Of a stretch of DNA of 64,000 nucleotides, positions 23,481-60,470 are shown piece after piece. Source of the DNA: Lepidodermella squamata (lineage: Eukaryota > Animalia > Gastrotricha); the NCBI GenBank assembly GCA_047495785.1, contig JBLDXI010000009.1, forward strand, positions 992,001-1,056,000, in the 5' to 3' direction. The translations under genes and the position numbers were made by a program. The notes under the pieces are model-generated. The model was not told the DNA's origin and ran no database searches. It saw nothing but the letters and a program-made list of their open reading frames with translations. Position 1 is the stretch's first letter. The number at the start of each line of letters is the position of its first letter.

Positions 23481-25270
23481 TCTTCCGCATCGAAATCGTG
23501 GGTAGAAAAACCGCGTATCAATCCTTTTTTCGGGTCCATGGAAACTTCGGGTCCAGGCCGCTGGGTCCCGGCACTCTTCCAAGCCTCTACTGTACGCCTC
23601 AAGCCTCCTCGCATTTCCTTTTTCGTCACCCGAATGGACGAAAGGATATTTCCCGTTTCCAAATAGTTCTTTGTCCAAGAACATTTGGTAGCAGCCACAA
23701 AATGGTTTGCCAAACACTCCAATTTTACCAGATTGCCAGTTGCCCAGAATGCCTTGCCATTCGTGCCCTTACCATTCTCCAGCGAGGGTATTCGTCCACA
23801 GTTTGGCTTGACAGATATTCGCGCTTGTCGAAGCATTTGATGGTATTTCTTCGTTCAATTAAGGCAGCATTCCGTCAGCTGGTTTGGGCATGGTTTGTGG
23901 GCTAGACCGCTGGTGAGCGAATTCTTCTAGGAAGAGACCGAGTTGGCAGGCCAGTCCGAACAAGCTGTTTGTCATTGGAGATGAGCATGGGCGACGGCAC
24001 CTCGCTTTGGACTATGAGAGACTCCTTTAAATGTTAAATACCCGTTGAAGCAGACAGCGATTGTTTCGCGCAAATCGATCCGGCTGGAGGAAAGAAGGTG
24101 GAAGAGTCAAGCAAGATTCAAGAGAAAATTCGTTAGATAATAATTTTCGAGCTTTGAGCTCTAAGCTCCAAGCTCCGAAAGGGACTCCAAGCTCAGAACT
24201 CGGCAGGAATATTTAGCAAAAAAGCATGCTATCAAAATCATGATTTTTGATGTGTACTATTTTGCACGTTGCTGCTAATTATTAATATTCTATTGCAACA
24301 ATAATTTTATATTAGTATTATATGTCAGGAGCAAATGACTTGTTGCCGGTTTATTTGCTCAGTGAGCGGCGGCCGCGACTATTATGATGCCGCGATTAAA
24401 TGACGTGTGACTTGCTTGGCGAGAGGCGAGAGATCTAAAGTTCCTAACTCTGCCTAATCTTCGCATCTTCGAATCTTCGTATCCCCAAAAATTTAATTTT
24501 TAGAAATGAAAAGGTATCCTGTATTTCCTGAACTGGCCTGGGTATTGGGTAGTTTCTGACTTCTGACTACGAGCTTGTTTTCGTGCCAATCAATACTCAT
24601 TAACGGCAGAATCAATTACATTTTAGCACGGCAAACTCGCGATAATCGAATTTGCTTTCCGAGGAACCTAAGAGAACATGCAAGAAGCGAAACTCGATGT
24701 TGCGAGAAGTGCCAAAGCCGCATCATCATAATTATCACACGTAATTGCAGACTTTGCTTGGATGAGGTGTCACCTGAAATCGTTCTTCGTTCAACCGACT
24801 GTTACGCCAGAGCACATAAGCGCTTACATTATTCAAGGGCATGCATTTGGTTACTCCGAAATACGAAATAGCGACTGGTTTTATCCCATGCTCGAAAATC
24901 CGTATTTGAGACCCCGCTAATGATTTCGGCGCTATCTTTATCTTCACAATCATCTGAAAGGGTAACAGTTGACGTTGAATCATTATTGCGCACCGTCCCA
25001 TTTAAAATGAACTGGAAATGAAGATCGGGCTGAAATCGCTTGACGGTTGACGGTTGACAGATCTCACATCCCATTATTTCAGATGAGGATTGTGGTTAAG
25101 TCGGGCCCGGGCATGCATATCACACCACACCCATCCCCTTTTCTCCGGACAAATAGCATCTGCTATCTCATCATTCCACTTCAATTTCAGCTTTCAGCGT
25201 GATTTTACTATTTATCTCTTGTATCAATCTCGCAAATTGTACATTTTTATATTTAGTTTTCCAACTTGAC

Positions 25271-25948
25271 ATGAAACTTCCTCTCTTTATTATCACTATT
25301 GCCGTGCTGAACATCGCCGTGAGCGATGCTTACTTCATTGCCGTAGATGCTCACACGGAAGAGTGCTTTTATGAGCGACTTACTTCTGGCACTAAGATGA
25401 CTCTGATGTTCGAAGTTGTTGAAGGCGGATTTTTGGATATTGATGTTGCGGTTTGTTTACATGATTTACTCCAATGACGGCGTAACTGAACTATTTCATG
25501 TTTTCAGGTACTTGGTCCAGATAACAAATCCATTTACTCAGGTGAACGCGAGTCAAGCGGCAAGTATACATTTGCTGCTCATATGGACGGGCTTTACAAA
25601 TACTGCTTTGGTAACAAAATGTCCACTATGACACCGAAAATTGTCATGTTCAGAGCTGACGTGGAAACGAAGCACGGCCTCAAAATCGCTGCGGCACCCG
25701 GCGAAACGACAGATCCTCAGCATCTGAAATTGGAGGAAATGATTTCGGAGCTTTCAAATGCTTTGACGAATGTTAAGCATGAGCAAGAGTACATGGAGGT
25801 TCGATCGCGTGTTCATCGTGAAATCAACATCAATACGAATTCTCGCGTTGTGATGTGGTCATGCTTTGAGGCAGTCGTTCTGTTGGCAATGACGATTGGT
25901 CAGATCTACTATCTCAAGCGATTCTTTGAAGTTCGTCGTATTGTTTAA
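25271..25948 (+). CDS. TMED2: p24 beta cargo receptor TMED2; intron 25451..25507
   Basis: [70 protein letters not shown] and [12 protein letters not shown]. Confidence 0.97.
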
Positions 25949-26194
25949 AGTTATTGCCGTAGTTATGCATGTGACACTAATCTTGTGGGATGGTTTCAGG
26001 TGTGCGACATTGTGCATATGCTAGTTAATGTATTGAAAGACCTGGTAATCTATGTAAATGGGTTCAAAAACCCTTTCGAGGTTCGTGCTTTATTTGCGGT
26101 TATTTGAAATAAACGCTGATATGTTTTTTGAAGAGTTTTATAATCTATACATTCTTGGCCTTGTTGTTCAGTATATAGTGTTTATGAATTGAGT

Positions 26195-29100
26195 ATGGAG
26201 CGAAAGTACAAAACCATATGTGGTAAGATAAACATACTTTTTTACTGAGTCTCTCTATTCAAGACATAATCATAGAGGGTTTGGATTATGGTGACAACAA
26301 GAAGGCGTTACAAGAATGCGATAAGTTGCTGAAAAAATTCGACTCAAAGAAGCAGGATAAAGTTGACGTCAAATTCATTAAAGTAAGTTTTCAGGCTTGC
26401 TATCACGATGCATAATAAACAAGATGACTATTTTGCTAGGCGTTGAAAAGTCTTGGATTCTGTCGTATGGGCAAACGTTCTGAATCGATTGAAGTTTTAA
26501 ATGGTTTGATCGATGAAAAGCCGACCGATATCGAAGTATTGCAGGTTATGCAGACTGTATGCAAAGAACTTCGCTTATGTAAGTTATAACCGAGCGAAAG
26601 TACGCAAAATAATGATTATCTTCAGACGAGTATCTCTGCACTATTTTTGAAAACGCTGCCAAGTCCAATCCGTCGGAGGAAGTTCTCTCGCATCTTTTCA
26701 TGGCATGTGTCATCAATAATGATTACAAGAGACAGCAACAAATTGCACTGAAGCTACATCAGATGTATCCGGAGAAAAATAATTATTACTACTGGTCCGT
26801 CGTCAGCATAATGATGCAGGTATTTGACAAAATTATAGTTCAAATTGTCGATAATCTCTTTCACCCAACAGGCGGCTTCTGAGCCGAAGCTTGCCAAGAC
26901 TATTTACCTTCCACTTGCTGAAAAGTTCTGCTCGAAGTCAGTAGCAGATGGACGAATGAATGCAGAAACCGAAATCATTCTATATTTGGATGTATTAAAG
27001 AGCCTCGGGAAGTACTCTGAAGCCATAGCGTTTCTACAGGAAAACAAGCTGTCCAAAATGATCGAGGAAAATGAGTATCACCTGACGCGCTTGGCTGAGT
27101 TTTATTATTTGCAGCAGGACTGGATGAATGCCTTTGACTGCTATAAGCGCCTATTACACAAGCATCCTGATCAATGGCTGTTTTGGGAAAGACTTGGCCA
27201 GAGTGCTTTGAATTTGCTGACCGATAAGAATGCTAAAAGAGTCGATGAAATCCAAGAGTTGGCTAACAAACTGCTCAGCTCTAAAAGCGACAAAAACATC
27301 CGAGCGTTGCTTCTAGCGCCGATTCAGGTTATTCTGTTGGCTAAGGAGAGCGGAATTCATGACTTACATTCAAGTGAGAGCTTACTAGCCTGCTATCTTA
27401 TAAATATTCGACTGCTTTTTAGGTAACTGCGATGCTAAAGTGCTGATAAAAGCATATTTGAAGCACTATTGCCACAAACCTTGTGCTATCGATGATCTGC
27501 GTCCCTACTTGACTCTGCTGAAACCGGAGGAAATCCAGGAGATTTATGAAGAAATTACCAATTCTCTTCGTTATTTTAAAAGTATATTTTGTGGCCATGA
27601 CGGTGATGCCGACGAGTCAAAAAATGGATTTCACATTCTTGACGATTTGGATAAGATAGCGACCGCCGAAGCGTTAACTTTCCACAGGGACGTCGTTGCG
27701 AGTGACACGCCTGTTTCTGTTTTCGAGGCTCGAACGAATCGACTCAAGGAAGTGCTGCTCAAGTTTGGAGCAATCAGCGACTCTAATTGCGGTAGCGTGC
27801 TGAATGAGGGTGATTATCGTTCCGGAGACCGCGTTGCTATTCTGGCTGCTAGCAATTTGTTGGAAATGTATCGCCGGTCAAAAAATGAAAACTATCTTTA
27901 TGAAGCTGGAACTTTGCTCATGCCACTTCCGAGCAACAATTATCAGAAACAGCTGTTGCTCTTGCTGATTTTTAATTTTCTGGGCGCCGGGGTTCACGCC
28001 TTCTATATTTACATTAAATTGGACATCAAACATATTCAATTCGAAACTTTGGGATACCTTTGCCTGTCAGCTTTGAGTCAATCTTGTTCCTACCAACACT
28101 ACTCAGCTTTGTTGGACGGCTGTTTACGTCAAAGCGCCGTATCTGGAGTTGAATTCAGTCATGCTATACCGCTAGCATATCACTATGGAACATTCACCAA
28201 GGCAAGTAATGAAAGCTGGAGTCAATTCAGCGATAATTATCATCCTACTTAAACAGATTCCTGAAATGGTCGAGCTGCAGCATCGATTGAAATTTTCAAT
28301 CGAGTATTTCCAGTTCACTGCTGAAAAAATGCTCCTTGATCTAGCGCATCAGTCAACTGAGGTAATTGTTGTCATGGTGAGTTGACAGGAGACGAAAGCT
28401 TTGATGATTTTAGGATATTCCGATTGTTGCGTCTGAGGTTGCAGAAAGCCTTTTGCGGGATAAGATACCTTGGAATGAGCTCGTGCTTAACCGAGATTTT
28501 TCCCCACTGGCTACGTGTTTTTTGCAACTGCCCAGCCAGAACGAAAAGGAGAAAATCTTGGAATGGCAGGTACGTAATTCTTACCCTCTATGTTTGCATC
28601 GCTTACAAAAAGATTAATTTTACAGAAATCTGCTCTTCGGTTGTCTTTGTCGGAAGCGAAGTTGGTGTCGTGCTGTGTTTCTCGACCGAACCTCGAAGAA
28701 ATAACTACACTCGGATCAGAACTCATTAACAATGCCAACGAATTTGCTTCAGAAAGCGAAAAGTTCTCAAAGACCATGTCGAATTTGTGGCCTATTGTTC
28801 CATATTTGTGTTATTGGCCAATGAATGATTTGTCAACGCTGTCCTCGAGATGCGTTCTACTGACCTCCGTGGCAAGATTATCAGCTAGAATTGTATCTGC
28901 TTTTGCTGACTTGGAGAAAGGTAAACTTTACAGAAATTGGTCACAGTTTTGAATTTTTTCCCTTAATAGCTGAACATGATTCATTCGATCGACCTATGGA
29001 GGCTGAGTATGACCTCATTCGCGATGTAAAAGAGCAGCTGAAAGGTAATAATTGATGGTATTCACTTATTATTGTATTTATTTCATGTGTTTTTAGGGTT

Positions 29101-29678
29101 AATTGTTACATCAGATGCCAACGGCGATGCAAGCTTCGAACGCCAAAACTTGTCTTTCCAGCGCTTGTCATCTATAATCAGGGTAAGATTTTGCATTCTC
29201 TGGTGTCATCGGAATTTTTCGCGTTATCTTCAGACGTTATGCGAAATTTCCGCTTGCGTGATCGTGCCAGTTGAGCGCATGCGGCATGTCAAAGCTCATC
29301 TGATAAAGTTGGCCAAGAAAAAGAGAGAAATCAACGTGGTTTGTTAATTTTGGCCAGATGATCCAGTTGATAATTTATTTGGGCAATTTTGTCAATTTTA
29401 GAACTGTAGCTTCTTCGATTCGCACAACGAACTAATCAAGTCTTTCCACGACACTGTGCAAGCCATTGCCAGTTACGTCAAAGAACAGTACGAGAAATTC
29501 AAGGTCATTTACGTGAGTGATCATTAATCAGTGTTAATGATAATGAGAATTTTTCCCTATACAGGAATCAGAAAATGCGGATAAATTTCGAAGCCGAGTT
29601 TTTGAAAGCTATTGTATTCAACTTCAGCAGCTTTCTGAAAGGCTGTCTCGCTTGAGCTCCCTAAAATTGGATGTTTAA
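26195..29678 (+). CDS. NAA25: NatB N-terminal acetyltransferase auxiliary subunit (MDM20); multi-exon
   Basis: LDYGDNKKALQECDKLLKK, EEVLSHLFMA, QQQIALKL, YYYWSVVSIMMQ, LDIKHIQFETLGY and AYHYGTFTK|IPEM. The C-terminal exons are less certain. Confidence 0.9.
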
Positions 29679-29895
29679 TGACCAGTTGCAGCAACGTGAA
29701 ATATATATTCGAATCAAAATTTCCAATAGGAAAATGTTGACGTGAGTGTTGGACTACTTTTTGATGTTTAACAAGGCCAAATCTAGTGAGAGTTTAACTC
29801 TAAAATATTGGCTGCGTAGTGACAAGGCTCTTTGTGATTCTTCTGACTTGAACAGCTGGCGCTAATTTTTTTCGGGCTTGCTTTGGTGTTTTAGA

Positions 29896-31079
29896 ATGGT
29901 TTTAATAATTGGTTACTGCGGCGATTCACTTTCACCCGAAACGCCGGAAGCATCTATTGAAGTCAACAAGATGGGCGGATTTCCTGTAAAATCAGTATTT
30001 TATCAATATTTTTACATTTTTAACTCTGCTGGCGTTGAAGGTTGTCCCTGAAGAATCAGCTAATGTTACGTTTTGTTGTTGCAAATGTGGGTCCCAACTT
30101 GATCTGGCATGTCAGCTATATTGTCCGCTGGATTCTAGTGAATTATGCCGGAATATCTACGTGTTCATCTGCCAATCGCTGAGCTGTTTGAGGTTGAAAT
30201 TTCATAGAATTGTGCGTGATGTAAAATGAAAATTCGCTATATGGACGATTAGCTGGGTGGCTTATCGAACACAGTACCCTGATTTGCCCAAGGTCTCTGC
30301 CAAACCTGGGCCTGTCGTTGTGAAGAAGGAGAACTGGTGCGAAGATGCTGATGAGTGGGGCGATGATTTCTCTGCCGTGGAAACCGTTGTGGAACCTAGT
30401 GAAAATCTACTGGGCGAGATCCCGATCATTAGAAAGGTTCGGTTGGTGAGAAATGCCGAAGAATCCTCCTTCTTGCCTTACTTCATTGACGCGTCTCAAT
30501 GCGTAGAAACTGATAGCAGTGATAGTGGCAGTGACCACATTTCAGGAGATGGTGTCGGGCTTGCTTCTGTTGACGCTAATGAATCTTGGTAAGCTATTTC
30601 TTCGGTTGAAAACTTATCCTCAGAATGCGATTTTTCCAGGCAAGATGAGGAATATGAGAAACCATCTCTCTCTTTTGACTTATGCACCTACAAGTTCTTA
30701 AAAAACGTGGAAGAAGATAGAGACCAGATTTTGAGGTATACGATGCTTTTCCGTCCTTATTGCCTATAAGTTTCCCCCCTATTCAAGGTATGATTTTGGT
30801 GGGAAGCCATTATGTTATAATCCCATAGATGAGCAACAAGATATAACTCCGTGCCGGCAGTGTGGTTCGAAGAGGCAATTCGAATGCCAATTAATGCCCA
30901 ATTTTTTTCGCTGCTTGAAACGTAATCCGAAATTTGGGCATTTGGATATTTTTTCGAAATACCATGTTACGACGGTTATGATATTCTCATGCCCTCTGAG
31001 CTGCGGTGGGAACTTCGAAATAACGCAAGAGGAGTGTATTATCCAAGTAGATAACGACTGCGACGGGTTTTTGAAATAA
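29896..31079 (+). CDS. PDCD2L: Programmed cell death 2-like protein (uS5/RPS2 chaperone family); multi-exon; may start at a micro-exon ATG at 29734
   Basis: NKMGGFP, C..CGSQL.LACQLYCPL....CRNIYVF.C, QILR|YDFGGKPL, C..CGSKRQFECQLMP and TVMIFSCPLSC. ATGTTGAC|GTGAGT at 29734..29747 splices in frame to the acceptor at 29894. Confidence 0.88.
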
Positions 31080-31112
31080 CAATCAGCTTATTTTATGTTT
31101 ACATCCATTTAG

Positions 31113-34100
31113 ATGTTTAAATTAGAATCGTATTTATCTCCATTTTTGTTGAATTGGTTAAACTCGTATGTCAAGCTGAAGAATGAAGATTTCAAGCTTT
31201 CTCTCTGGGAAGGAGACGCAGTGTTTAACAAACTCGATCTCAGATTGGAAGTTATTCAGGATCTGCTACGACTTCCTTTCAGTATTCGCAGTGGTCGAAT
31301 TCAAGAGCTGCGCATTCACGTTCCATGGACGAAATTGGGATCAGAGCCAATATGCTTGACTATCAATACGATTGAGTTCGTTATGTCGCTCCCGAGTGAC
31401 GAGGAAAAGTCATCTGGCACCCAAAAAAATGCCGAAACGTTGTCTACCGAATTTGAGAAATCGGCTGAATTCGTGCCTACGCCACCACAGCCTACTGTTG
31501 CTACTGCTCAGCAGCAAAAGCAGCCTTCTTATCTTGAATCTATGATTTTCAAAATCCTGAACAACATTCAGGTACTTCATTCCATTTTTTGTTTTAATTT
31601 TGTCATTGTGCTTGTTTTTCGCAGATTGTCGTCAACAATTTGATAGTGAAATACGTCGAGGGAGATATGATCGTATCTGTAAACGTAAAATCTGCCGAGT
31701 CTTGGTCTTGTGACTCGGATTGGAATAAATCATTCGTAGACGTTCTGCCACCTAATTTTTCACTGCGAAAAGTTGCTAACTTGAATGACGCTACAATCTG
31801 TTTAGGTTTGTTTCTGAGGACCAATCATCTTACTAATTAATAATTCACTTTATTCAGATAAATGTACCCCCTCTGGCAAGATTGAGTCTTACAATGAGCC
31901 GTTTATGTACAGATGCTCGCTTCAATGTCGCATGGTTTTCGAGTATCCTAATCCATATGCTCGCATTCCATCATCCACAAAGTTGGCATTTTTCTTCGGT
32001 GAACCGGAGTTTTCGCTTGCAGACACACAGTTGCCTCTTTTGTTGCGTTTGATCCGAACGGGACTAATGGTTGTTTACGGTAACAATCCGGATTCCCACC
32101 ATATATCCAATAATCCAGATCGAAGACTCTCGGCAACCGCCATCCAGATACCCGATGAGTAATTTGGCACCCCCACCAAGTTAACTAAATTACTTTTTAA
32201 CCTGTTCGAAATTTTCAGGTCATCGGCGCAGTATCCAGAAAATCAATCTCAAGGCGAAGGAGCGGGATGGGGTAATTGGGCAATGTCTTACCTTCCCGGA
32301 GTTGTCAGCTGGACAACTGGGATTCAAGCTCCTTTAATATTACCAGCTGATGCAGCTGCGCAAAACGAGCCTCCCAAACCCAGCTTCACTTTCGTCGGAA
32401 TATATGCAAAACGTGTGACCTTCTCTTTGAAGCTTTCAAAAAAGCATGTCGATCCTCTGGGAACTTCCAGTCGTATCCAGTTTCATCCATGCTTAACCGT
32501 CGTCGCCATCGATGTCAAAAACGAGTTGATATGGCGCGGAGATTCGTTCTTTTCTTGCTCTGTTATACTCAATACGCTCATAGGCAAAACCGCTGGTTTT
32601 TGTACTTGCCATGTGAGAGATGAAGGGGTAAGTTTATCTTTTTCTCTGGTCACCTACTTCAATTGAGATATTGATTTTGCTGATAGGAGCAAGTGATTGC
32701 ATGTGGTCAGTCTTCACCAGCGAGTCTTCCGATCCTATTTGATGAACTGATCGTCAGCTGCGATGGTGTTCCCAATAATGCGGACGAACATCTGCTGAAA
32801 TATTCAGACGAGCGCGTTGCCGAATTGCAGCCAGCTTTCATGTTGGATTTCATCGCTGACCAGGATAAGACTCGCGAAAAGCCCGAGGCTCCTCTTGATG
32901 AATTGCGTCGATTCCAGCGAGCTATTTTCAGGTGGTTTGTCTATAACCCGACAATATCTTTGACTGGCGGGTTGTTCCACCGAATGTCGAAATTCCTGAG
33001 CCATGCTCAAAAATCTGAATTCGATCTCTTTTCCGTTGTTCGAAGTGGAGACGGTGAAAATGCTTCCAAAAACGCAATACGTAACCCGTTTTCCGACCAG
33101 GATATTGCTAGTCTTGATTTCAATGTATGCGGCCGTTCTGATCGAGTGCTAATTCGCAACTTCACAGTTCTGGTCGCATTGAATAATCATCCATCGGCGA
33201 TGCCTGGAAAACATTCTGGAATATTCTCACCCCGTTTGTCGCAAGTCGGATCGCCTTTGCGCTTATTTGCCGGCAGCATCTTGGTCGCAAAAACCGAACC
33301 TCTTTTCCCTAAAGAAGTCGGTTTCGCTCTCAAAGCATATTCTGGCCCGTTGACTGAAGACCTGATTTCGCCGTGCTGTGCTCAGTACGCGATTGAATGC
33401 ACAAATGTTTCGCTGGACTTGCCATCGGAGACCGGAGCTACCTATGCAATTGCTTGCGGATTGAGCTTTTCTATGACTGCAAAGAACTACTCGGCACTTG
33501 ATCCAGTAATTCTGACTACTGCGGGTCTAGCCAGCGACTTCATCTCTTTCACCCTACCTGAAATTTCGCTGACGTTCAATTACCCATGTTTGCTGTATTT
33601 TTCCCTGCTGCTGTCCTCTTACAACGACGTCAGACCCGCTGTTGGCAGTAGCAATATGGCATTACCTTCACAGCCAGCAACATCGGGTCTCGCGATGCTG
33701 GCGAATGCTTTGTTGGGAATGATATACAGCGGTTCTCAGGAGGCATTTTTGTTCTCTCTCGGCAATGTGCTGGTTCAACGCGCTGATTTCGCCAATGCGC
33801 ACGTCGCATCTAGCACAATTTCGTGTCTCTCAACAGTTGTGTCTTCGATCCGGTTCGACTTAATCCGGAAAAATGGCGTTCTTTTCCCAATTCTGTCATT
33901 TACCCAATCTGATATTCCTTCAGTAGCTGTTTTTGCGCAGTGGGAGGCGTTGAAACCGCGAGTCCATTACGTTCTTGCGTCTTTCAGTCCATTGGTATTC
34001 AATTACTCCAAAGACCTGAACGAAATCCTGCAGTCAATCGATCTGACTCCATATCTCGAGCCAAACAAACAGATGAAAACTGGACCAGGAGGTGATCAAG

Positions 34101-37100
34101 GGCAGCTTTTAGGGGCTCGAACGTCAAATCCGAATAGATTGGAACAGCAAACCTCTGGTCACCAGAGCGCGTTTCGTCTTCTCGCAGATCTGCTGGCTAG
34201 CGAAACAGTGTCCACGAGCAAGCCGATTACAAGTGGAAATGATGATAGTGTCGTTTCGATGGTCAACGCGTTTCGTAACGCCGTGGTCAACATTCATGCT
34301 GGAAGTATTCATGTCAAAATTCTTGAAGATCTGTTGTTGCAACTTCCTCGTACAACCATCTCCACTCCAAGTGGATTTAAGCGTGTATTGACACAGCAAC
34401 TGTTTCAGCTGTCGGAGCCTTTGGAAGTCATTCAAGAAGAAACCATGTTATGGACAATTCGTCTGGAAAACATTGGTTTTATGTTTGGTTCCAAGCAGAT
34501 ATTCAACCCTCCTCTGACCATGTGGGCAACTCTCTCGGCAATTCAGAATGCTGGCGAGGTAACAGAGATCCTCGCCCCTGCATCTGCTCTTACGGCTCGA
34601 CAGCAGTTATCGCTTCATATTAACATGGAAACAGTTTCTCTTCATCTCCATCGTTCGGATTTACGCACTTTGCATTCGTTTCATTCGACTCTGATGCGAA
34701 CAGCCCGAGTCGTGGCTGCCCAACTTGATGTTTTGCCGTCATCTATCAGCCGACTCAATTCTCCTGATGAAAATGAAGAAAAAATGAATGTAGGGCAACC
34801 CCAATTCGGATCCATTCAGTTTTGGATTCAGTTGACTGTGCCGCGCTTTGGCGTCATTTTCTCCCTCGACAATGAGTTTGGCAAGGAGCGTCGTGTTGCC
34901 CTTACCCTGGAAACATCAACCTTGTCTATTGACAGCCATCCACTCTATCAAAAGATGCGCCTCAAAATTCAAACTCTACATGGGGAGGCTGAGCATAAGG
35001 TTGTTGATGAAACTACAGGTGTGATGACATGGGTACGAGAGAGCTCTTATTTCTATGCCACTAACAGCCAGCCCATTGAATTCGGCTCATACGAACTGCC
35101 GGCTTCCTCCGAAGTGACCGACGACGATTTGACCCATAGCGTTGGTGACGAGTTCATAATTAGTGTTACGACCGCAAAGGTGCGCGATGTTTTCGTCCGA
35201 GTTCAAGAGCCTGTCCAAAATAATGTAACTGTCGCCCGGACGACTAGTGGCGAACCATTTTCTCCTTCACTGGCAGGCGGAAGGGCCAGCGCATGTGCGG
35301 GTGACTCGAATAATTTTTCAGCTGGGTTAACGGAAGTATGTATTTCCTTACCCAACATGGATGTCGTTATTTGCCGGGAAGCTGTGGAAGTTGCAGCTAG
35401 TCTCATTATCTCCGAAGCCCCAACGCAAACAAATACCGCTCTCGAAGAAGCTTGTTCTTCGCCGGTGATTTACGTCAACTCAGGGACTATGCGGTGCTTT
35501 CTAAACATTCAGAACCCTCTTAATAACAACTGTCCCTTCGACTTTTTGTTGCTTTGCTGCCGATTGTCTATAACGAGTGACGTAGAATTCAAGTCGAATT
35601 CCCGGAGGCACACCATGACTTTTGACAACAGCGTGAACTTTGCAAATACTACTCGCTCGTCGACCGGCTTCGGTCAAAATAACCAAGGCGTTGCCGAAAG
35701 TCAGATGCAAATTTCTCTCGAGCAACTGAGCGCGTTTGTTGGACATTGGGCGTCATTGTCGCTTTTTAAAACAGCTGCTTTCGGTCGGTTGTCGCCTCAC
35801 GTAATGAATAATCCAGCTCTTCAATGGAATTTGCGCTCACCAGGACACTTGCCGTCGTTTCACCTGGCTGGTCATGATAAACACGCTTTGATTCCGATTT
35901 TGGTGAATCCAATCGACTTGACTATTTCCGTGTCGAATGTTTCTTTCGAGTTGATATTCAAGCAAGGAGTTGAGCTGAAAATGATATTGAATCTTGTTGA
36001 GCCAATCATGGCTTGGTCGAAAACTTTGTCAAACATTGGAAAAGACGGCTCGGCCTCGAAGGATCATGACTCCAAGCCTTTTGAATCAACAATTTTGTGC
36101 CCAAATCTCGTTGTTACGGTTGTTTCTGCAAAATCAGAATCATCAACTTTGACTAATCACATGAAAGCTGTGATATCTCGGCCTCAGCTCTCTCATCGTA
36201 TTGCTGGGCAATCTATTCTGAAGATTTCATGCCATGGAGTGGAGATTTCTGGTGATGAAAATAAGGAGATCATAATTTCAGCTTCGCGAGACCATGCTCT
36301 AATGTTTTCTCCAGTGATGTTGTTCACGTCGAAGGTTTCTGCGTCAACTCTGAACATTTTTGAGCCGGTTAATATCAGCTTGAATTCTGAGTCTATTCGA
36401 TTACTTGTGGACGTGGTTGAGGCCCTCCAAAGCGTGCTAGCCGCTATTCCGAGTGATTACTCAGGTCCATCCGCGGAGCCTGAGACTGGTCAGCAATTCG
36501 ACGTTGAGACCGATCGAGTCGTGTTGACGTATCGCAGTCGTGAAGACTTGATGAGTCAAGTGTCTTGCAACTCCTTTTCGATGGAAAAATTGGCTTCAGC
36601 CAACGGCAGCTCTTCCAAGTTTGTCATGCACGCCGAGAAAATCCTAGCCTTTCAATTCAATGATAAACTTCGTCATGATCATTGCGTGATGGAGCCAACC
36701 GATTTTGACGCTACAGTGAACATCCGAAACATTCGAATTGGGGAGAAAACTCACTCGTATGATCTTAAGCAAGCCACTGTCATGATGACAAGTTCGCCCA
36801 TCTCCATGGTTCTAACGGAGGAAGGGATTCATTTGGTGAATGAATTCACTCAAACGCTGCTTGATAGCATGGCCCGTTTGCAATCGCACAGTCCTCTGCC
36901 TGAATTGGAACAGAATCCTCTGAAACAACCAGAGATGTTCTTTTTATCGCACGATGACTTGCGTAACGAGGCTGTCAAATATTTCTTCATTTCTCAAACC
37001 TTGGTTGTCGCGTGTGAATCAGGCACTATTCCTGTCAACATTCCTGATCCGGGCCAAGTTTTCATAGCCAATGATGGTCTGCTATGGTCGTATCCCGAAC

Positions 37101-40100
37101 CGCGATCTCTCACAAAAATGACGTTATCTCCTTTGCCGTTTACTGTGCAAGGTGATCAAGAAGTGATTTGTGTCCTTCAGCGTTTCGATGACATTTCATC
37201 TCAATTCGTTCCGATTATCAGTTTCCGCGTTCCCTCTGAAAAACCGTTGAATGTGCAAATAGAACAAAACTACGTTCCATCGGTTTTGTATCGCATGATT
37301 TTAAAACAACCTGTGGCTCCTCCAATGCAAGTCGAGGCCAGTGCAGTGCAGCCAGAAGCCGTACCACCGCCGGCTACACTCGCTGCATGTTGCTGCGTCG
37401 ATTCCTGCTTCTCAAGCAAAGTAACCCCGACATTGACCTTCATCGCTTCTTTGTCAAGGATCGAGGTAACATTGGCGCATCGCTTTCCTCCTGTAACTCC
37501 TGCGGCAGCTAAGGTGCTACCATTTCCAGCTGTGCAATCGAGCCGTAGCTTTCCACCGCAGCGAATTGTAATGGCGAAACTATCCGACGTTGCTATTCAA
37601 GCCCGTGAACAGCCAGATAAAGGCACATCTGTCGATTGCCGGCTGTCTGTGTCAGTTTCATGTCTGAATCCTCGAGATATGTCCTACTGTGATATTGTTG
37701 ATGGGGCAGTTCATTTTAATCACATTTATAGCCATGTGGCCCTTGCAACAGACATTGAATTCCATCGCTTAAATATCGTGGTGAACGACGTGTTGTTGCG
37801 AAATCTTTATATCTGCGTCAACCGTCTGCTTTCGAAATGTCTTCCCCAGCATGAAGGGGGACAAGCAGCTGAGATTTCAAAACTGTCGTGTCAAGTCCCC
37901 AACTCGTTTCTGTGCAATTTGACTTCCGGAAGTCTTGTCATCTCAGACTTCGATCCCAATATGCCAGCGCCTGACATCAAAGTCGAGCCACAGCAATGTG
38001 CCCCCTTTCATTCTCATTCTGTCTACTTGTCATGTGATCATTGGCCTGTTGCCTTGAGTTTAGCCGAATGGTTCGAAGCCGTTGATAAAAAAGTCGTTCG
38101 CGTGATGCCAAACGAATCTCATGCTTTGATAATTTCTAAAGAAATCATCACAACTGACGACAAAACGGAAATAACCTATTTGGGGGTATCATCCTCCTTC
38201 GTCGTGGCTAATTGTTTGAACGCTTCTTTTGCCGTCAAGTGTCTCCAAGAATTCACGGTTTCAGCTATGCCTTTGTCAATCACTTCAGCTTCTTCCATTG
38301 TAAAAATCCGGGACGATCAACTTACTTTTGAATTCACAGCTGCTGATGGACTCTGGGCTTCCACCGCTCCTGTTAAATTGCGGCTTAAAACAGGCTCCTT
38401 CGCTTTCGTTGCAATGAAGGGAGCGACAAGTGATAAAAGCAGATCGTCTAATTCAGAAGCATCATCGTCAACTGGAATGTTTACTATGGTTGCTTCCGTC
38501 GTTGTTGAAAAAATCGAGTCATTTTACCACGTGATGCTACTTATTTTGCCACCTTTTCTGTTTGAAAATGACTTTCCTGTGCAAATGAACGCTATTCTCA
38601 CGAATCCTCATCGAGGAAAGGTCATGTGCGCGGTAAGAAACCTGAATATCTCCGCTTTAATGCCTTATTTTTGTTATTTTTCACCATCAGCTCAACTCCC
38701 TCAACACTCCTTATCCATTTTGTGATATTTTTCATGATGAAATGGTGCATTTGGCAATATCGGCAACATCAGAGCTGACCGAAACGAATTCATCCACGCC
38801 GCCTGTTACATTTTCTCTCGATTCGCTTACTGATGTTCGAGACCGTATCCAACCAACTACTGTAGAAAAGGCTATTCAGACGGTATCTAATTGGCTGAAA
38901 TCAGTTTCGAAAAATACTGTCTCTAAATCACCTGCAAACATCAATCTCGTTAACGAAGCCGCCATTCAAATCGTTTCTAGCCGGGTGTTCCCGTTTGCTC
39001 CAAGTTTGAGCGTTAAACTGACCCCCGGCATCCAAATTGTGAACTCAACCCCGATTCCTTTGGTTTTATTGAGTACTGACGGCTCTGCTATTAGCATCGC
39101 CGCGAACTCTACAATTTATGCTGCGCGGCTGATGGCTGGAGTCAAGCTTGGTTATTACGATTCCAACGTTCTCTGGCAATCCAAGCCAATCGACGTCATC
39201 CTTGAAGCTGATAAGGATGATGTGTTTGTTGTTGACGATGAAAACACAGATTACGAGGCCGAGTATCGCGAAAATTTTTCCGCTGATCGAATCACTCTGC
39301 CGGCGAACAAAAGCTGCCGGCTGGGTATAGTGATCCCACCTCAACAAGTGGAGTGTCTGCTAGTTATCTCTTCGAAAATCGTCACTCAACAGTGTTTGGG
39401 CAGTGAAAGCCAAGTTGCCGTTCTCAATTTGAGCTCATTTTTGTCTGTCAAAATGCAATGTGAGATGATCGGCAAAGTATCTTGCCAATATCAAAATGAA
39501 TCACCGTCACACAATTGCCCTCCCTTGGCTACCTACAATGTGAATCATGGCGTTTTGACTGAAATGCCCTTCGTCGCCATTGCCTCAAATGTCGTCGAGT
39601 CTAGCTACAATGACGCCGTTTACTTCTCACTGAGCGGGGCTCCGTCAAGTTTGCGCCTGCCATTCTCAGGCGTTCCAAGTCGATATTTGTCTGCGGTTGA
39701 ATCTGATCATGTATTGGCTTCTATCTCCACCTGGGTGTTTCATCGCGACGATAAGGACTGGCCTAGGGCGAAAAGGCTTGTAATTGGTGTTCAAGACAAC
39801 GCGTTCCATGATGTAACTATTCGCAATATGTGTGATTTTGACGTTCATATACGCGAAGCTCGAATGGAGACCCCGCCATCTCACGATATGTGGTGTTTAC
39901 CTGCGGGCATGTCGCTGGAATTGGCTTTTTCGACACCTGATTCTACGGCGGTTCGGTTTGGCGTCGCTACTCCTGGCACTGCTGATTTAATTTGGTCGCA
40001 AGAAGTAACTTTGCCGTCTGTTTTAAACAGCACATCTACTTCGTTGAACGCGGGCGGCGCCAATATTGTTTCGTTTGGGCAAAAATCTGTCTGCGACTTG

Positions 40101-42236
40101 CAAATGACAATCGACGACTATTGCGACACAATTCCTCAAATCGTCATCAAAAACCTGATCAAAGCTTTGGTCGCTAAGCAGGAAAAGAAAAACGTCGTAG
40201 TCCAGCCTGCCACAAAGGTGTCTCCAGTTCCGGTTTCAAGGCGGTCTTCTTCGATCAGCGCCCGCGTCTCTTCGCCTACTGCCTCGTCCATTCACTCGAA
40301 TCGTTCGGCTCGTCGAACAAAAACATTTGTATGTCGAATTGAAAACGTGCAAATCATGTGTACCGATAGTGGAAATGTCACGCCCCGCTTTGTTTTTACC
40401 ATGGATGGATTGCAGTTTGGTGCAAGCATGTTTGCCTTCCGTGGCGATGAATTGCGCGAAGGTTGGTACTGTTTATGAATATTTGAAGTAATTTATCCTC
40501 TTTTATTTTTAGCAACTGCTGGAACGTTTCAAGCGTCAGCCAAACGGATGCAGCTGGATAACTACGTTGCTCAGGGTTCGAAGTCTTCTAACTGCACATT
40601 CCCCGTCATACTGCTGTCTTCTGCTCCCGATGGTTCTCCCCAATGCTTCCGGTTAAGTGGAACTTTGTTGAATCGTCTTGGGGAAACAACCATCACGTCT
40701 TTGGCGCTGTCTCCTGGCTCGTTTACAGCCTTTGTCGAGGACATCAACATGCGTGATCTGGTTGATTACATCCTGCGATTGGTTTGCGCTTTTGAGAAGG
40801 AAGATGTTAGCCTATCTTGCGCTATTCCGCCCAATCCACTACCGTTGCGTGGCTTTTCCATCGACGCTTGCAGTGTAGATCTGACGGTTCGAGCGTCGCT
40901 ATACGTTTACATTGCAGCCAACCGGACGCCACTGAATTTGAGCGCCTTTAAACTGAGTTCGACTTCATTGACATGGTCTCAGTTGATTCATCGTCTGACT
41001 ACATTCTATGTGAGAGGTGCCATTTTCCGAGCTGGTCTCTTGTTTGGTTCGTTGAATATCATCGGACGGCCGCTTTCTCTCGTCAGAACAACGACCTCTG
41101 CCGTTCGCGACATTTGCTACTCGCCGTTTTCTGGCCGAGGTATACTTTTGACTGCTTCTAGCGCTGCAAGGAGTGTTTTGGCCGATGCCATTTTGAGCGT
41201 CGCCGACTTTGCTGAATCAGTGGGCCGAAATGTCAACTTCTCCAGCCAACCACCGATGTCACCTGCTCATCAGCCGGAGACTGTTTTTGAGGGCTTGAAG
41301 CAAGGCTTTACGGCCCTGGGAATAAGTTTGGTTGGCGCAATAGGTGGTCTGGCTGGTCGCCCGATGGAGGAGATTTTGAATGCCTTGGAAGCGTCTGATT
41401 CGGACCAAACTACTGTTGCTCGAAGTGGCGGATTTTCCTCCCTCGCTCGCGTTTCTGCTGCTGCAACTCGTGGTGTTGGTCTCGGAATTGTTGGCTTGGT
41501 AACGCAGCCCATGGCCGGTATTTCTGAATTTGTTGCCGTGACAGGTCATGGTCTATTGAACTCGGTTGGGCAACCTAATTTGCCTCGTGTCGCTGATATG
41601 CAACCATTCTTCTTCCAAAAAGACAAGCTAGATTCAAGGAACGTTTGGTATCGAATCGAAGATTCTCTTGCGTCTTTCCATTTCACAGGTGGTCACGTGA
41701 TTGCGTTGCTTCGGACTGAAGTCTCCAGTATCTGCGTCATTTTGTGTCGCAAAACCTTGTCACTGTTCAATTTATCCGAAAGAATTTTGCAGCAGTCATT
41801 TAGCCTATCGGATATTGAAATCATTGTTGAAGAAGCTGGGGATTCTTCTTCCGGAAACAATGTGATCAAGGTTTATCGAAAACTGTCTAGCTCTCGAACC
41901 ATTGAAGATGAGGATAATGGTCATCATGGATTAGGCGATGAGATTGATCTTAATCGGTGGCGTGTCGAAGCTTACCTTGCATCCTCAGCCGGTCCTCTTG
42001 CCACAGAAACCAGGGATGCGGTGAGATCGCCCCCTACTTATGGCATCTATTCTTCCGCTCTGTCAGTGCAAAAATCAAAGCAGAAAGTGTCAAATTCATC
42101 AAATTGGCAGAACCAACAACCACTTTGTTCTCTGGTCATTCATAAATCGCATAGTCTGAATAATGTGACGCGATTTTTGACGGTTTTTCTCTATTTGCGA
42201 GATGTCCTTTCTCCTAATTTTTCTGTAGATAAATAG
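31113..42236 (+). CDS. VPS13B: VPS13B/COH1 bridge-like lipid transfer protein; ~7 exons, including one of ~6 kb
   Basis: Chorein N-terminus MFKLESYLSPFLL.....YVK.....FKLSLWEGDAV..KLDLRL, SGRIQELRIHVPWTKLGSEP and YRCSLQCR. Internal NPALQWN, DDLR and WSYPEPR.LT. C-terminal QLDN, GAIFRAGLLFGSLNIIG and GISLVGAIGGLA..P. Confidence 0.92.
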
Positions 42237-42548: not shown

Positions 42549-45470
42549 ATGGATGCCGTGAGCTTGGCTCCGGATGCGGATCTTGACGAGTCGATTGACA
42601 GAGCCGATTTTTCCGTCGAGTTCACTCCTGAAATTTTACAGATTCTGGACTCAGTTCTCCCAAGCGAAGATCCCTTAGATCGTCCCGATTTCGACATAGT
42701 TGCTTACATCAATCAAGTGTTTCCCAACGAGCAATCGCTTGCCAATATCGATGGTGTTATATCAGAAGTGCGCGGCAAAATACAGTAAGCTTCACCTACC
42801 CTCGTTCGTGCTTCAACTTCAAATTATTCTTTCAGCAAACTGGACGACGATATTATTGCCGTTGTACGTGGACAGGCTGTAGCTGCGACAGCAAATGATG
42901 GTGCCGATGACGGTAGAGCGGCGTTGAGGGAAGCCGAAGGAGCCATCAAAAACCTCATCGGAAAAATCGTCGATATTAAATGTAATTATTTACTTTTGTT
43001 TGCTTTATCAAAATAATCATCTTTATTTGTGCGTCAGCGAAAGCCGAGAAATCTGAAGACATGGTGAAAGAAATTACTCGCGATATAAAACAGCTGGACC
43101 AGGCAAAACGAAATCTGACGCTATCAATTACGGCGCTTAGTAACTTAGAAATGCTTGCGACTGGCGTGGATTCCCTGGTTCAATTGTCGAAGCAGCGAAA
43201 ATACGCTGAAGTTTCCAGGATGCTGCAAGGTGTTGAGAACGTAGTTCAGCAGTTCGGTAACTACATGCATATTCCTCAAATTCGGGAAATGGCCGATAAG
43301 GTCAAAATGATCCAGTCGGACCTTTCGCAGCAAATAATGACGGATTTCAAAGACGCTTTTCAAGGTGGCGGGCTTCGACACGGATCCGGTCCAACGCAGC
43401 AGCAGTTGACAGAAGCGTGTCTTGTCGTTCAAGTCTTACCGCAGCGTGTTCGCCAAGAATTGCTGACATGGTTCATACAGCTTCAGCTCTCCGAGTATCT
43501 AGTACTTTTCGCTGATACTCAAGAATCGGCATGGCTAGATAAAATCGACAAGCGTTTTGGTTGGATCAAGCGGTTACTTGTTGACTTTGATGATACATAT
43601 GCACCGCTATTTCCTCCTAGTTGGAATGTTACCGAGAGAATTTGCGTCGAATTTTGCCGGACAACTAGGAATGAACTTTCTAAGTTGATGCAAAGGCGCT
43701 CAGCCGACATTGATGTCTCAACTTTGCTCTTTGCTATTCAAAAGACTACAAACTTCGAGCAACTGGTCGCTAAAAGGTTCGCTCGTTTGAAAACAAACAA
43801 GTGTCAATTCATGCTTCTTATGTCTATAGGTTTACTGGTGAGTCGATCGAGAATCGCGACCCTACCAGATCGCCATTTGCTGGCATAATTTCTAAATGTT
43901 TCGAGCCGCATCTGGTTGTCTACATTGACGCTCAAGATAGAAACTTGGCTGAGATGATGATTAAATGGCAGTTGGAATTACGCCAGCAGCAACCTTCGAA
44001 CACCTCACTCAGCGGTGGCGTTCTTCCACCTGACCCTCTAGCTGCCGCAGCCGCATCTGAAGGCTCCAATGTCTTCCGATCGGCTGGAGATTTGTTCCTT
44101 TTCTACAAAGATTGCCTGCGTCAATGTACTTCGCTGAGCTCTGGACAGCCGATGCTGGAACTCACCCGTGTTTTTCAAAAATATCTACGAGATTATGCAC
44201 AGAAGATTTTGTCTGCAGCTCTTCCGAACCCTCGGCAGCCGTCATCCGCCAGCGCTACTCTTGCAGCTTCGGTGGCTGGTAAAGACTTCAGCACTGCCGC
44301 AGCTGCTGCTGGATCTCTGTTCGGGTCGCTATTGAAAGACGAACGAACTGGACAGTCGTCTAGCGATGCCATCAGGCTAACCGACGGTGAACTGGGACGT
44401 GCCTGTGCAGTCCTGTGTACTGCCGAATATTGCTTGGATACCACGGGACAGCTTCAAGAGAAGCTGAAGGAAAAAATTGACAAAGAACTCGTCGATAAAG
44501 TTAACCTAGCGCATGAGCAAAGCCATTTTAATAAGTAAGCTCGAGTCTAAACTCAATAATTCGTTTTTATTTCGACTTTACTCACAGTGCTATTGGTCAA
44601 ACGATTCAACTACTTGTTGCAGATCTCGAATCAGCCTGCGATACCGCGCTATTGGCGATGACACGTTTGAATTGGAATACGGTCGAGACCGTGGGAGACC
44701 AGTCGCCTTTCGTAACCACCCTTGTCAGCCACTGGAGATCAACCGTGCCAGTTATCCGCGCCGGTCTCAACGACTGCCGGCAGTATTTCACGCAATTTTG
44801 TATCAAATTCGCAAAGTAATTTCAATTTTTCCGCTATCGTTTTCATTTCATATGGTTTCATTTTGTGTGTAGCGTATTCGTAACTAAGTACGCGCTTCAT
44901 TTATTCAAGTGCCGCTTGGCCGGAACTATGGGTTGTGAGCAGTTATTGCTAGACACGCATTCTTTGAAAACTGTTCTGCTCGATTTGCCTAACTTGGGAA
45001 GCAGCGAAAGTCGAAAAACACCAGCTTCCTACACAAAAATTGTTGTGAAAGGTATGACTAGGGCGGAGATGATTTTGAAGCTGGCTAACTTCCCGATTGA
45101 ACCTGCGACAACTTTTGTTGATAACTACGTTCGATTGTTGCCGGATGGCGACGCGTCAGAGTTCCAAAAGCTGTTAGAGATGAAGGTCGGTTGATAGCGA
45201 CATTATGTTGTCAACAAATTTAAAATCATTTTTTCCTTTTTCTAGTGTTTGAAGAAGTCGGACCAACCATCTTTGATTGAGCTTTACAGACAAAGGCAAC
45301 GGCAGCATTCGGGTTCCGTGTCGGAAGTTCCTGCGCGTAGCGAGGCGGAGAAGCCTACCGCTTCATCGGCATCGATCGCTGTGGTTTCACCAGGTGACAG
45401 TAGCAGAGGTGACGTTCCGCCTAGTCAATCGTTGAACAAATTGGAGAAATTGATCAAAAGGCATCTATGA
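42549..45470 (+). CDS. VPS53: GARP/EARP tethering complex subunit VPS53; ~8 exons
   Basis: [84 protein letters not shown] and EFQKLLEMK. Confidence 0.96.
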
Positions 45471-58926: not shown

Positions 58927-60470
58927 TGGTTGGATGGATGGATGGATGGATGGATGGATGGATGGATGTTAGACCCTGACACCAATTCTGGTGATTTAAC
59001 AGGGCTTCGGTTGATGAGTTAAAACCTGTCACCGATTATTCGGTGTTAGGCGCAGAGTGGCACAATAGAATACGAAAATAAATTATAAAAATAGAGCTAT
59101 GATCTATTTGGTCCATTCAGACACCTGCTCGATGAAGAATTGCTGCAAGTAGGCGGCTTTGCGACAGGCTTTCGAGCTAGTCAGCTTACGAATGAAGGGG
59201 TCGGTCTGACTCCATGCCTTCGAGCCGCGGATGAGGAAAGTTCGGTCTTGGGTGACACTGTCGGACTGCGTGGCCTTGAGGCTGCCGTTAGTGGAACTGC
59301 GAAGTCCTGGGTTCACCTCCGTCTTCGGCTTGAAGAGCTCGATTAGCTCGACTGGTGCTTCGCCATGCAGGCACTGGAAAACCAGTGAGTGTGTTGTTTC
59401 GTGTACGTGCCTTCGTCCAGTGAGTGTGAGCCATTTCAGGTGGCGGCGCAAATCGTCAACTGGACATGAGTAGTCTTTCATCATCAGAGCTCTGATGGCG
59501 TTATCTTGAGCTCTATCAAGGGTCTTCCTGGCGGCAGCAGAGCCAGCACTGAGTATAACGGCACAGTAGCTGAGTCGCGAGTTTACCAGGCTGTTGAAGA
59601 TGGCTTTGCGACCGTCTAACGGGATACCGTTCTGGCCGGCTAGACGGAGGGCGTAAGATCCGCTGCGACACTTCGCATGGACGAGCTGGGCGTGTTCTTC
59701 AAAGCTGAGGCGATTATCGACTTGTACTCCGAGCAGCTTGATTGATTGTTGAGGATGAATGAGCGTTCCGTTCACATTGACTGGTAGGTTGGCGTCGATT
59801 TTCGCGGTTTTCGGGCCGATGTACATTATTTGAGTCTTCGTTTCATTCAACTTAAGAGAGTTGACACTTGACCAGTTTGCGACATTGCAGAGCTGTTTTT
59901 CGAGTATGGACTTCGCTTCATCAATTGTTGACCCAATCGCATAGATCGTAGTGTCGTCAGCGTACATAACGGAATAGCAGTTGGGATCGTTGATAGTCTC
60001 TGGCAGTTCATTAACATAGACGGTGAAGAGAAGAGGGCCGAGGACGCTCCCTTGAGGGACACCATATCTGATTGGCAAGGGCGACGAGGAGATGTTGCCG
60101 ACTTTAACCTTCTGGTGACGGTTAGATAGATAGTCCGTGAACAGGTTCAGGGCTTCGGGTCCAAGACCAAACGAACGGAGAGATTCGATAACCCCAGCAG
60201 GGTCAAGCGAATCGGACGCCTTTGATAGATCCAGGCTGGCAGTGGCGACGTACTTGTTTTGTGCTGCAGCTACGAGCCATTTCTCAGCGAGCGATACCAG
60301 ACAGCCGCTTGTCGAGTGGTGTTTGCGAAATCCGAACTGATATTTTGACAGGAAGCTGTTCAGGTGAGGTTTCAGTTGTTCACCTAGGCAGCGTTCGAAG
60401 AGTTACAGGCAGCCAGGTAGAATCAAGATAGGACGGTAATTCTCAGGCAGCTGGTTCTCGCCCGACTTGT
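58927..60470 (-). mobile_element. 5'-truncated CR1/L2-group non-LTR retrotransposon (RT domain, 3' UTR, CATC tail); defective
   Basis: ENYRPI, QFGFRKHHST, LDLSKASD, GVPQGSVLGPLLF, YADDT, LKLN..KT and KLLGV. There is an in-frame stop near 60404 and no endonuclease domain. Confidence 0.93.
58931..58967. repeat. (TGGA)n microsatellite, which is the (CATC)n 3' tail of the adjacent LINE
   Basis: About nine perfect TGGA units directly abut the LINE 3' UTR. Confidence 0.9.

Follow-up and report, generated by a model that had tools for sequence, protein, structure and literature searches.

How does the VPS13B gene of the gastrotrich Lepidodermella squamata obtain the 5' end of its messenger RNA (mRNA), when the stop codon of the preceding gene, PDCD2L, lies only 33 nt upstream of its start codon? 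The locus is part of a stretch of 64,000 nt (contig JBLDXI010000009.1, positions 992,001 to 1,056,000 of the forward strand), hereafter called the window, which has a GC content of ~43%, the value also published for this species (PMC11660948). Our analysis suggests that VPS13B is probably a downstream cistron in a conserved operon, and that spliced-leader (SL) trans-splicing at 31112/31113 probably resolves the transcript. The features that meet at this junction are as follows.

29896-31079, + strand: PDCD2L, in a five-exon model encoding 321 amino acids (aa), with GT..AG introns of 51-60 nt
29896-29985, 30041-30192, 30253-30588, 30640-30735 and 30788-31079, + strand: the exons of PDCD2L, the last of which includes the stop codon
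31077-31079, + strand: stop codon TAA of PDCD2L, read from the sequence
31080-31112, + strand: intercistronic spacer CAATCAGCTTATTTTATGTTTACATCCATTTAG, 33 nt and pyrimidine-rich, followed by the ATG at 31113-31115
31111-31112, + strand: splice-acceptor AG abutting the VPS13B ATG, CCATTTAG|ATG, a candidate spliced-leader trans-splice site
31113-42236, + strand: VPS13B, with exon 1 at 31113-31571, a 2010-aa exon at 32693-38725 and the stop codon TAG at 42234-42236

The junction is confirmed as it was first noted. An earlier reading made from the sequence alone (the sequence-only reading) had counted 33 nt between the stop codon of PDCD2L and the ATG of VPS13B, and the coordinates bear this out. 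It had also stated that the spacer contains no AATAAA and no convincing splice donor, and a scan of 31000-31112 (the spacer and the 80 nt upstream of it) agrees: neither AATAAA nor ATTAAA occurs there, and the sole GT of the spacer, at 31097, is no usable donor because the 14 nt that separate it from the AG are too short for an intron. The pyrimidine content is 72% across the 25 nt upstream of the AG. An AAATAA overlaps the stop codon of PDCD2L (31074-31079) and lies 32 nt upstream of the AG.

We then investigated whether ATG 31113 is the start of VPS13B. Residues 4-153 of the predicted protein match positions 2-155 of the VPS13_N profile (E=8e-30), and the protein database matches to exon 1 carry the name VPS13B. 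The homologues in other animals begin MFKLES or MFKIES, as does the protein here. The profile match from position 2 onwards and the shared start of the homologues indicate that ATG 31113 is the true start. The description of an acceptor TTTAG fused to the VPS13B start codon is therefore correct, as this ATG is the true N-terminus by homology. The last exon of PDCD2L (30788-31076), on the other side of the spacer, matches the Pfam domain PDCD2_C (E=1e-14).

Further evidence for the operon comes from a distant relative found in metagenomes. The PRPF4 open reading frame (ORF) of the window has one match of 75% identity, on metagenome contigs; the matches in named taxa are 42-48% identical, come from many phyla and are roughly equidistant, with one moth match at 35%. 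The 2010-aa exon of VPS13B retrieves the same relative, and one of its scaffolds (L016, 34 kb) spans the whole region. On one strand, this scaffold carries the order TMED > NAA25 > PDCD2L > VPS13B, collinear with 25268-33655 of the window and beyond, and VPS13B is collinear with a further contig of the relative (L015) as well. The two genes upstream of PDCD2L, and the start of PDCD2L itself, are the following.

25271-25948, + strand: TMED/p24 (EMP24_GP25L), the first gene of the conserved block, assigned by tblastx collinearity with the relative's scaffold (68-93% identity) and by Pfam on the genes of that scaffold
26195-29678, + strand: NAA25, the non-catalytic subunit of NatB (MDM20), matching Pfam NatB_MDM20 (E=2e-32), with the stop codon TAA at 29676-29678
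29893-29894, + strand: acceptor-like AG before PDCD2L, GGTGTTTTAG|A ATG, 1 nt upstream of the start codon

In the relative, the stop codon TAG of PDCD2L (L016 7946-7948) and the ATG of VPS13B (L016 8045) are separated by a spacer of 96 nt. Here, too, an acceptor directly adjoins the ATG, TTTTATAG|ATG (in its longer context, CATTCATATTTTATAG|ATG), and a second contig of the relative, from another sample, is identical at the VPS13B junction. The spacers of the window and the relative cannot be aligned except for TAG|ATG and the coding sequence. The conservation of AG|ATG within an otherwise unalignable spacer argues that splicing uses the AG at 31112 as an acceptor. The T found at position -3 of the VPS13B ATG in both species also argues for this, as it would make a poor context for initiation in an mRNA that kept the genomic bases. 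An AATTAA lies 21 nt upstream of the abutting AG in the relative. At the start of PDCD2L, the relative has GTTAATTTAG|TG ATG, with the AG 2 nt upstream.

The synteny between the two species is limited. It ends upstream of the four-gene block, where the kinase genes that lie 5' of TMED in the relative have no match in the window. A second pair, PRPF4 > G-patch, is conserved with a gap of 96 nt in the window and 54 nt in the relative, and downstream of it the synteny ends again, the next 9 kb of the relative having no match in the window. Gene order is conserved beyond the background synteny, a comparison that is based on two blocks only. Shared transcription constraining these blocks would explain why microsynteny is limited to tight same-strand blocks. 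The gaps inside the four-gene block are short, as in SL-resolved operons: measured from stop to ATG, they are 33 nt between PDCD2L and VPS13B and 217 nt between NAA25 and PDCD2L. As in the operons of the Ciona/Oikopleura type, no AAUAAA is found within ~40 nt of the 3' end of PDCD2L. Within the window, AATAAA is present 3' of the stop codons of TMED and PRPF4, and absent 3' of those of NAA25 and PDCD2L.

The genes of the block differ in their rate of change. VPS13B exon 1 is 73% identical between the window and the relative. PDCD2L, which spans 6854-7948 of L016 in the relative, diverges much faster, at 33-42% identity, than this N-terminal part of VPS13B, the TMED exons (68-93%) and PRPF4 (75%). 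Intron turnover is seen as well. The 5' part of the relative's VPS13B is a single 626-aa ORF (L016 8045-9925), and the corresponding part in the window has short introns, for example at 31572-31624, 31806-31857 and ~32628-32686. Conversely, the relative has an intron (L016 9881-9928, which is L015 104-151) within the counterpart of the window's 2010-aa exon.

We then investigated the transcripts. The sequence-run data comprised two contig sets, X1, which is RNA-like, and X2, which is DNA; assembled contigs of this kind drop rare forms. The X1 contigs skip introns, indicating that this set behaves as RNA. All nine introns confirmed in this way are 49-63 nt long. Among them are introns 3 and 4 of PDCD2L (the last two), confirmed by a spliced contig, and seven introns of 49-63 nt in NAA25, confirmed by one spliced contig that extends to at least 29830, 65 nt before the ATG of PDCD2L. 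The PDCD2L contig covers 30272-31078 at a depth of ~53. No RNA contig is found on 31079-32700, although holes in a contig set prove little. Since the depth of ~53 is not continued into VPS13B, it is unlikely that the two genes share an abundant mRNA, bicistronic or fused, or that PDCD2L has a long overlapping 3' untranslated region (UTR). These intron sizes also bear on the acceptor at 31112. The donor of a cis intron ending there would have to lie in PDCD2L or before it, which would make the intron 1.2-1.4 kb long, at least 20 times the usual size.

The contig ends at 29830 and 31078 were considered as RNA 3' ends and rejected. The ends at 29830 and 30272 were not taken as RNA ends, because they adjoin variant sites of the DNA set at 29831 and 30271. 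At 31078, the RNA contig adjoins a break in the DNA contigs (30781-31085), so that its end there probably stems from a break in the graph and does not mark the end of an RNA. The hole in the DNA set at 30781-31085, together with the stop of the RNA contig at 31078, points to strain variation, to an indel around 31079-31085 or to filtering by the software.

The acceptor itself was compared with the other AGs of the window. Among its 2338 ATGs (both strands), 6.3% have an abutting AG, and at 13 of the 2338 (0.56%) the abutting AG scores at least as high as that of VPS13B over the upstream 16 nt. The acceptor matrix was trained on the nine RNA-confirmed introns only and is small and overfitted, so leave-one-out scores are given for these introns; the real acceptors range from -3.2 to 5.2, and the AG abutting VPS13B scores 0.36. 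TTTAG or TTTTAG serves as the acceptor in three of the nine introns. An automatic short-intron finder was tried as a training set and dropped, as it was too noisy. A window-wide count of AGs before the ATGs of long ORFs gave a weak enrichment (4.3% vs 2.7%) and was also dropped, most of these ATGs being internal.

The likely reading of the locus is therefore an operon with a trans-spliced downstream cistron. It rests on the anatomy of the junction, its conservation, the separate PDCD2L mRNA and the scale of the introns, and from these we infer both the leader joint and the co-transcription. In this model, transcription of the same-strand cluster TMED > NAA25 > PDCD2L > VPS13B would run across the 33-nt spacer. 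Splicing to the AG at 31111-31112 would then create the 5' end of the VPS13B mRNA, and spliced-leader trans-splicing is the most probable form of it. The leader would constitute the entire 5' UTR of VPS13B, and AUG 31113 would take its context from this leader. The sequence-only reading had also proposed that this 5' UTR comes wholly from a leader; the proposal has gained indirect support from the conserved AG|ATG and gene order, the intron sizes, the T at -3 and the PDCD2L RNA that stops short of VPS13B. The 3' end of the PDCD2L mRNA would lie inside the spacer. As only 33 nt are available, the branch point is probably located at or just after the stop codon of PDCD2L; it may be placed in or just before the spacer, near the stop codon, in the region of GAAATAAC and GCTTAT.

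How the 3' end of PDCD2L would be formed can be envisaged in more than one way. Polyadenylation at the AG would fit, and so would ordinary cleavage at a site a few nucleotides upstream of it. Cleavage downstream of the branch point might be expected to block trans-splicing of the same molecule, as has been discussed for Ciona (PMC1488885). That the trans-splicing cut would also make the 3' end of PDCD2L, as suggested earlier, is speculative. We regard a stronger form of the operon as rather unlikely: an essentially intercistron-less operon of the Ciona type in a protostome lineage, with a branch point overlapping the stop region of PDCD2L, where the cut at 31112 either creates the 3' end of PDCD2L or makes the two mRNA maturations mutually exclusive.

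Several observations weigh against an operon resolved by trans-splicing. In the sole RNA set, VPS13B is not covered, loose ends are absent, and neither a leader at 31113 nor a poly(A) junction is seen. Nor does any contig of this set, which drops rare forms, cross 31079-31113 as a precursor RNA would. The score of the acceptor is ordinary and not outstanding, being in the top 8% of all 7232 AGs of the window. In several other animals, the ATG of VPS13B is preceded at 5-19 nt by acceptor-like motifs, and there PDCD2L is not found upstream. Finally, TGACG(T) motifs in the cluster could be candidate CRE-like (cAMP-response-element-like) elements and might mark internal promoters. A TGACGT is located ~150 nt before the ATG of PDCD2L in both species, at aligned positions (~29738-29743 in the window and ~6701-6706 in L016), and another directly follows the stop codon of PDCD2L in the relative (L016 7949-7956), at the start of the spacer. 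The last two of these observations lead to the alternatives that fare best.

VPS13B might have its own promoter, situated in the last exon of PDCD2L or in the spacer. The mRNA would then have a short genomic 5' UTR, with the TTTAG unused, and the small distance would be no more than a feature of a compact genome in which 3' and 5' ends overlap. The RNA levels of PDCD2L and VPS13B, which are more than 50-fold apart in X1, would be in line with separate promoters, as would the promoter-like TGACG motifs that occur between genes of the cluster and where the spacer begins in the relative. VPS53, the gene downstream of VPS13B, has TATAAAAG beginning 62 nt upstream of its ATG. However, the 33-nt spacer contains no TGACG, and no TATA-like element is found at a usable distance. 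A promoter of its own would also leave three things unexplained: the retention of AG|ATG in a spacer that cannot be aligned, the T at -3 in both species, and the restriction of microsynteny to tight same-strand blocks. We thus consider this explanation unlikely.

Alternatively, the AG at 31112 might be a cis acceptor, joined to a non-coding first exon of VPS13B that lies within PDCD2L or before it. PDCD2L would be nested in the first VPS13B intron, on the same strand; the first exon is possibly shared with PDCD2L and alternatively spliced to 29894 or 31112. The acceptor-like motifs before the VPS13B start in other animals suggest that this acceptor may be an old cis-intron feature, that is, the remainder of a 5' UTR intron, and a consensus donor, GAC|GTGAGT, is located near 29741 in the gap between NAA25 and PDCD2L. 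However, an abundant RNA contig reads through this donor, and the relative has GTCTAG at the equivalent site, which is a poor donor. Neither an orphan exon nor a donor is conserved between the window and the relative. The required length of ~1.2-1.4 kb also contrasts with the 49-63 nt of all nine RNA-confirmed introns. These findings make a cis intron improbable. The acceptor at 31112 may have descended from such a 5' UTR intron and turned into a trans-splice site.

The third alternative, a fused PDCD2L-VPS13B mRNA or protein, made by removing a 66-nt segment or by joining PDCD2L exon 1 (phase 0) to the ATG exon, is highly improbable: 31047-31112 does form an in-frame GT..AG segment of typical intron size (66 nt, GTAGAT...TTTAG) that holds the stop codon and leaves both frames open, but the RNA contig of depth 53 is unspliced over 31047-31078, no RNA contig lies on VPS13B exon 1, the GT is missing at the matching site in the relative, and the VPS13 N-terminal domain starts at residue 1 in all homologues, so the GT..AG segment is probably a chance occurrence.

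We then compared the junction with known operons resolved by trans-splicing. The sequence-only reading had pointed out that the SL1-type operons of C. elegans and the operons of ascidians have essentially no intercistronic DNA, and this matches the literature (PMC1488885). In Ciona, operons lack intercistronic DNA, the poly(A) is added right after the acceptor AG, and mostly no AAUAAA is present; one leader serves both monocistronic and operon genes, and it has been proposed that trans-splicing frees the upstream 3' end, or else that the two maturations are mutually exclusive (PMC1488885). The locus described here is similar in that unrelated genes follow each other on the same strand, an acceptor is at or next to the upstream 3' end, and the upstream gene has no AAUAAA. 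It differs from Ciona in that 33 nt separate stop and ATG, that the junction is known from its anatomy and conservation, and that the animal is a protostome and not a tunicate.

A minor class of C. elegans operons, the SL1-type operons, has an upstream poly(A) site abutting the downstream trans-splice site, and the three characterised cases have a canonical AATAAA upstream (PMC1488885; PMC12582326). Some C. elegans 5' UTRs consist of nothing but the leader, the shortest measuring 22 nt (PMC5580712). The tight junction of PDCD2L and VPS13B, where the leader is possibly the whole 5' UTR, resembles these cases, but PDCD2L has no AATAAA, and the animal is not a nematode, its best named matches being only about 45-48% identical and spread over many phyla. 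In Oikopleura dioica, intercistronic regions are 23-30 nt long and the upstream cistrons lack AATAAA; in S. mansoni, the median intercistronic distance is 99 nt and the minimum 5 nt; operon gene pairs of this group of animals persist between species (PMC1488885; PMC12582326). The window shares the short gap and the conserved gene pairs with Oikopleura and the flatworms Schistosoma and Macrostomum, and the absence of AATAAA with Oikopleura. The Oikopleura and flatworm operons are backed by leader-joined complementary DNAs, in contrast to the anatomy and conservation that speak for the operon here. The junction is also comparable to the ordinary 5' UTR intron of VPS13B in other animals, as an acceptor-like motif precedes the MFKLES or MFKIES start. 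In L. squamata, however, the acceptor touches the ATG, and a complete gene on the same strand ends 33 nt upstream, unlike at the VPS13B loci of other animals. A protein word search with VPS13B exon 1 gave matches of at most 52% identity; the loci of these matches (L001-L004), like the metagenome loci L007-L014, lack an upstream PDCD2L.

Gastrotricha are the sister group of flatworms. Leader-resolved operons in this phylum would be new to the literature searched: a full-text search for "spliced leader" together with "gastrotrich" returned nothing relevant, and the genome paper of Lepidodermella squamata does not mention trans-splicing or operons (PMC11660948). The mechanism as such is already known from the operons of Ciona and Oikopleura and from the SL1-type operons of C. 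elegans. If the leader joint at 31113 is real, this would be a very tight operon junction for an animal, with a downstream 5' UTR consisting of the leader alone, and the branch point, the polypyrimidine tract and the upstream 3' end would share 33 nt. Such a junction would offer a compact natural test of how trans-splicing relates to the formation of the upstream 3' end: the two may be coupled, or each may exclude the other. The 2006 study of Ciona left this question open (PMC1488885). The four-gene block kept in a deeply diverged relative would also allow operon constraint to be followed through evolution in a lineage other than the nematodes, tunicates and flatworms.

Acceptor-like AGs also precede the starts of other genes in the window. 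The TATTTAG before TMED ends 14 nt short of the ATG, against 10 nt in the relative; an AG lies 1 nt before the start of VPS36 and 8-11 nt before that of the G-patch gene. The N-terminus of NAA25 was placed by comparison with the relative. The AATAAA that follows the stop codon of TMED is located at 26108-26113. Upstream of TMED, at a distance of 210-300 nt (24960-25060), a triple run of TTGACGG/TTGACAG and TTGACGTT are found, which are likewise candidate CRE-like promoter elements. The gene downstream of VPS13B is the following.

42549-43888, + strand: VPS53, 5' part, matching Vps53_N (E=4e-92) and starting 312 nt after the stop codon of VPS13B

CCATTAG ends 5 nt before the ATG of VPS53. PRPF4 does not begin at the first ATG of its ORF (49661): homology with the relative places the start at ATG 49739 (MAQEKRSVIHFGSLEE), and an acceptor-like AAATTTAG is located 26 nt upstream of this true start.

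Four genes of membrane traffic are found in the 64-kb window, namely VPS36 (5497), TMED/p24 (25271), VPS13B (31113) and VPS53 (42549). Three of the four are in or beside one same-strand run, which may reflect functional clustering or coincidence. An Rfam scan of the window detected no RNA family and no SL RNA. On the minus strand, 59104-60078 contains an ORF with an RVT_1 reverse-transcriptase domain (E=3e-16), indicating a retroelement fragment or copy near the end of the window.

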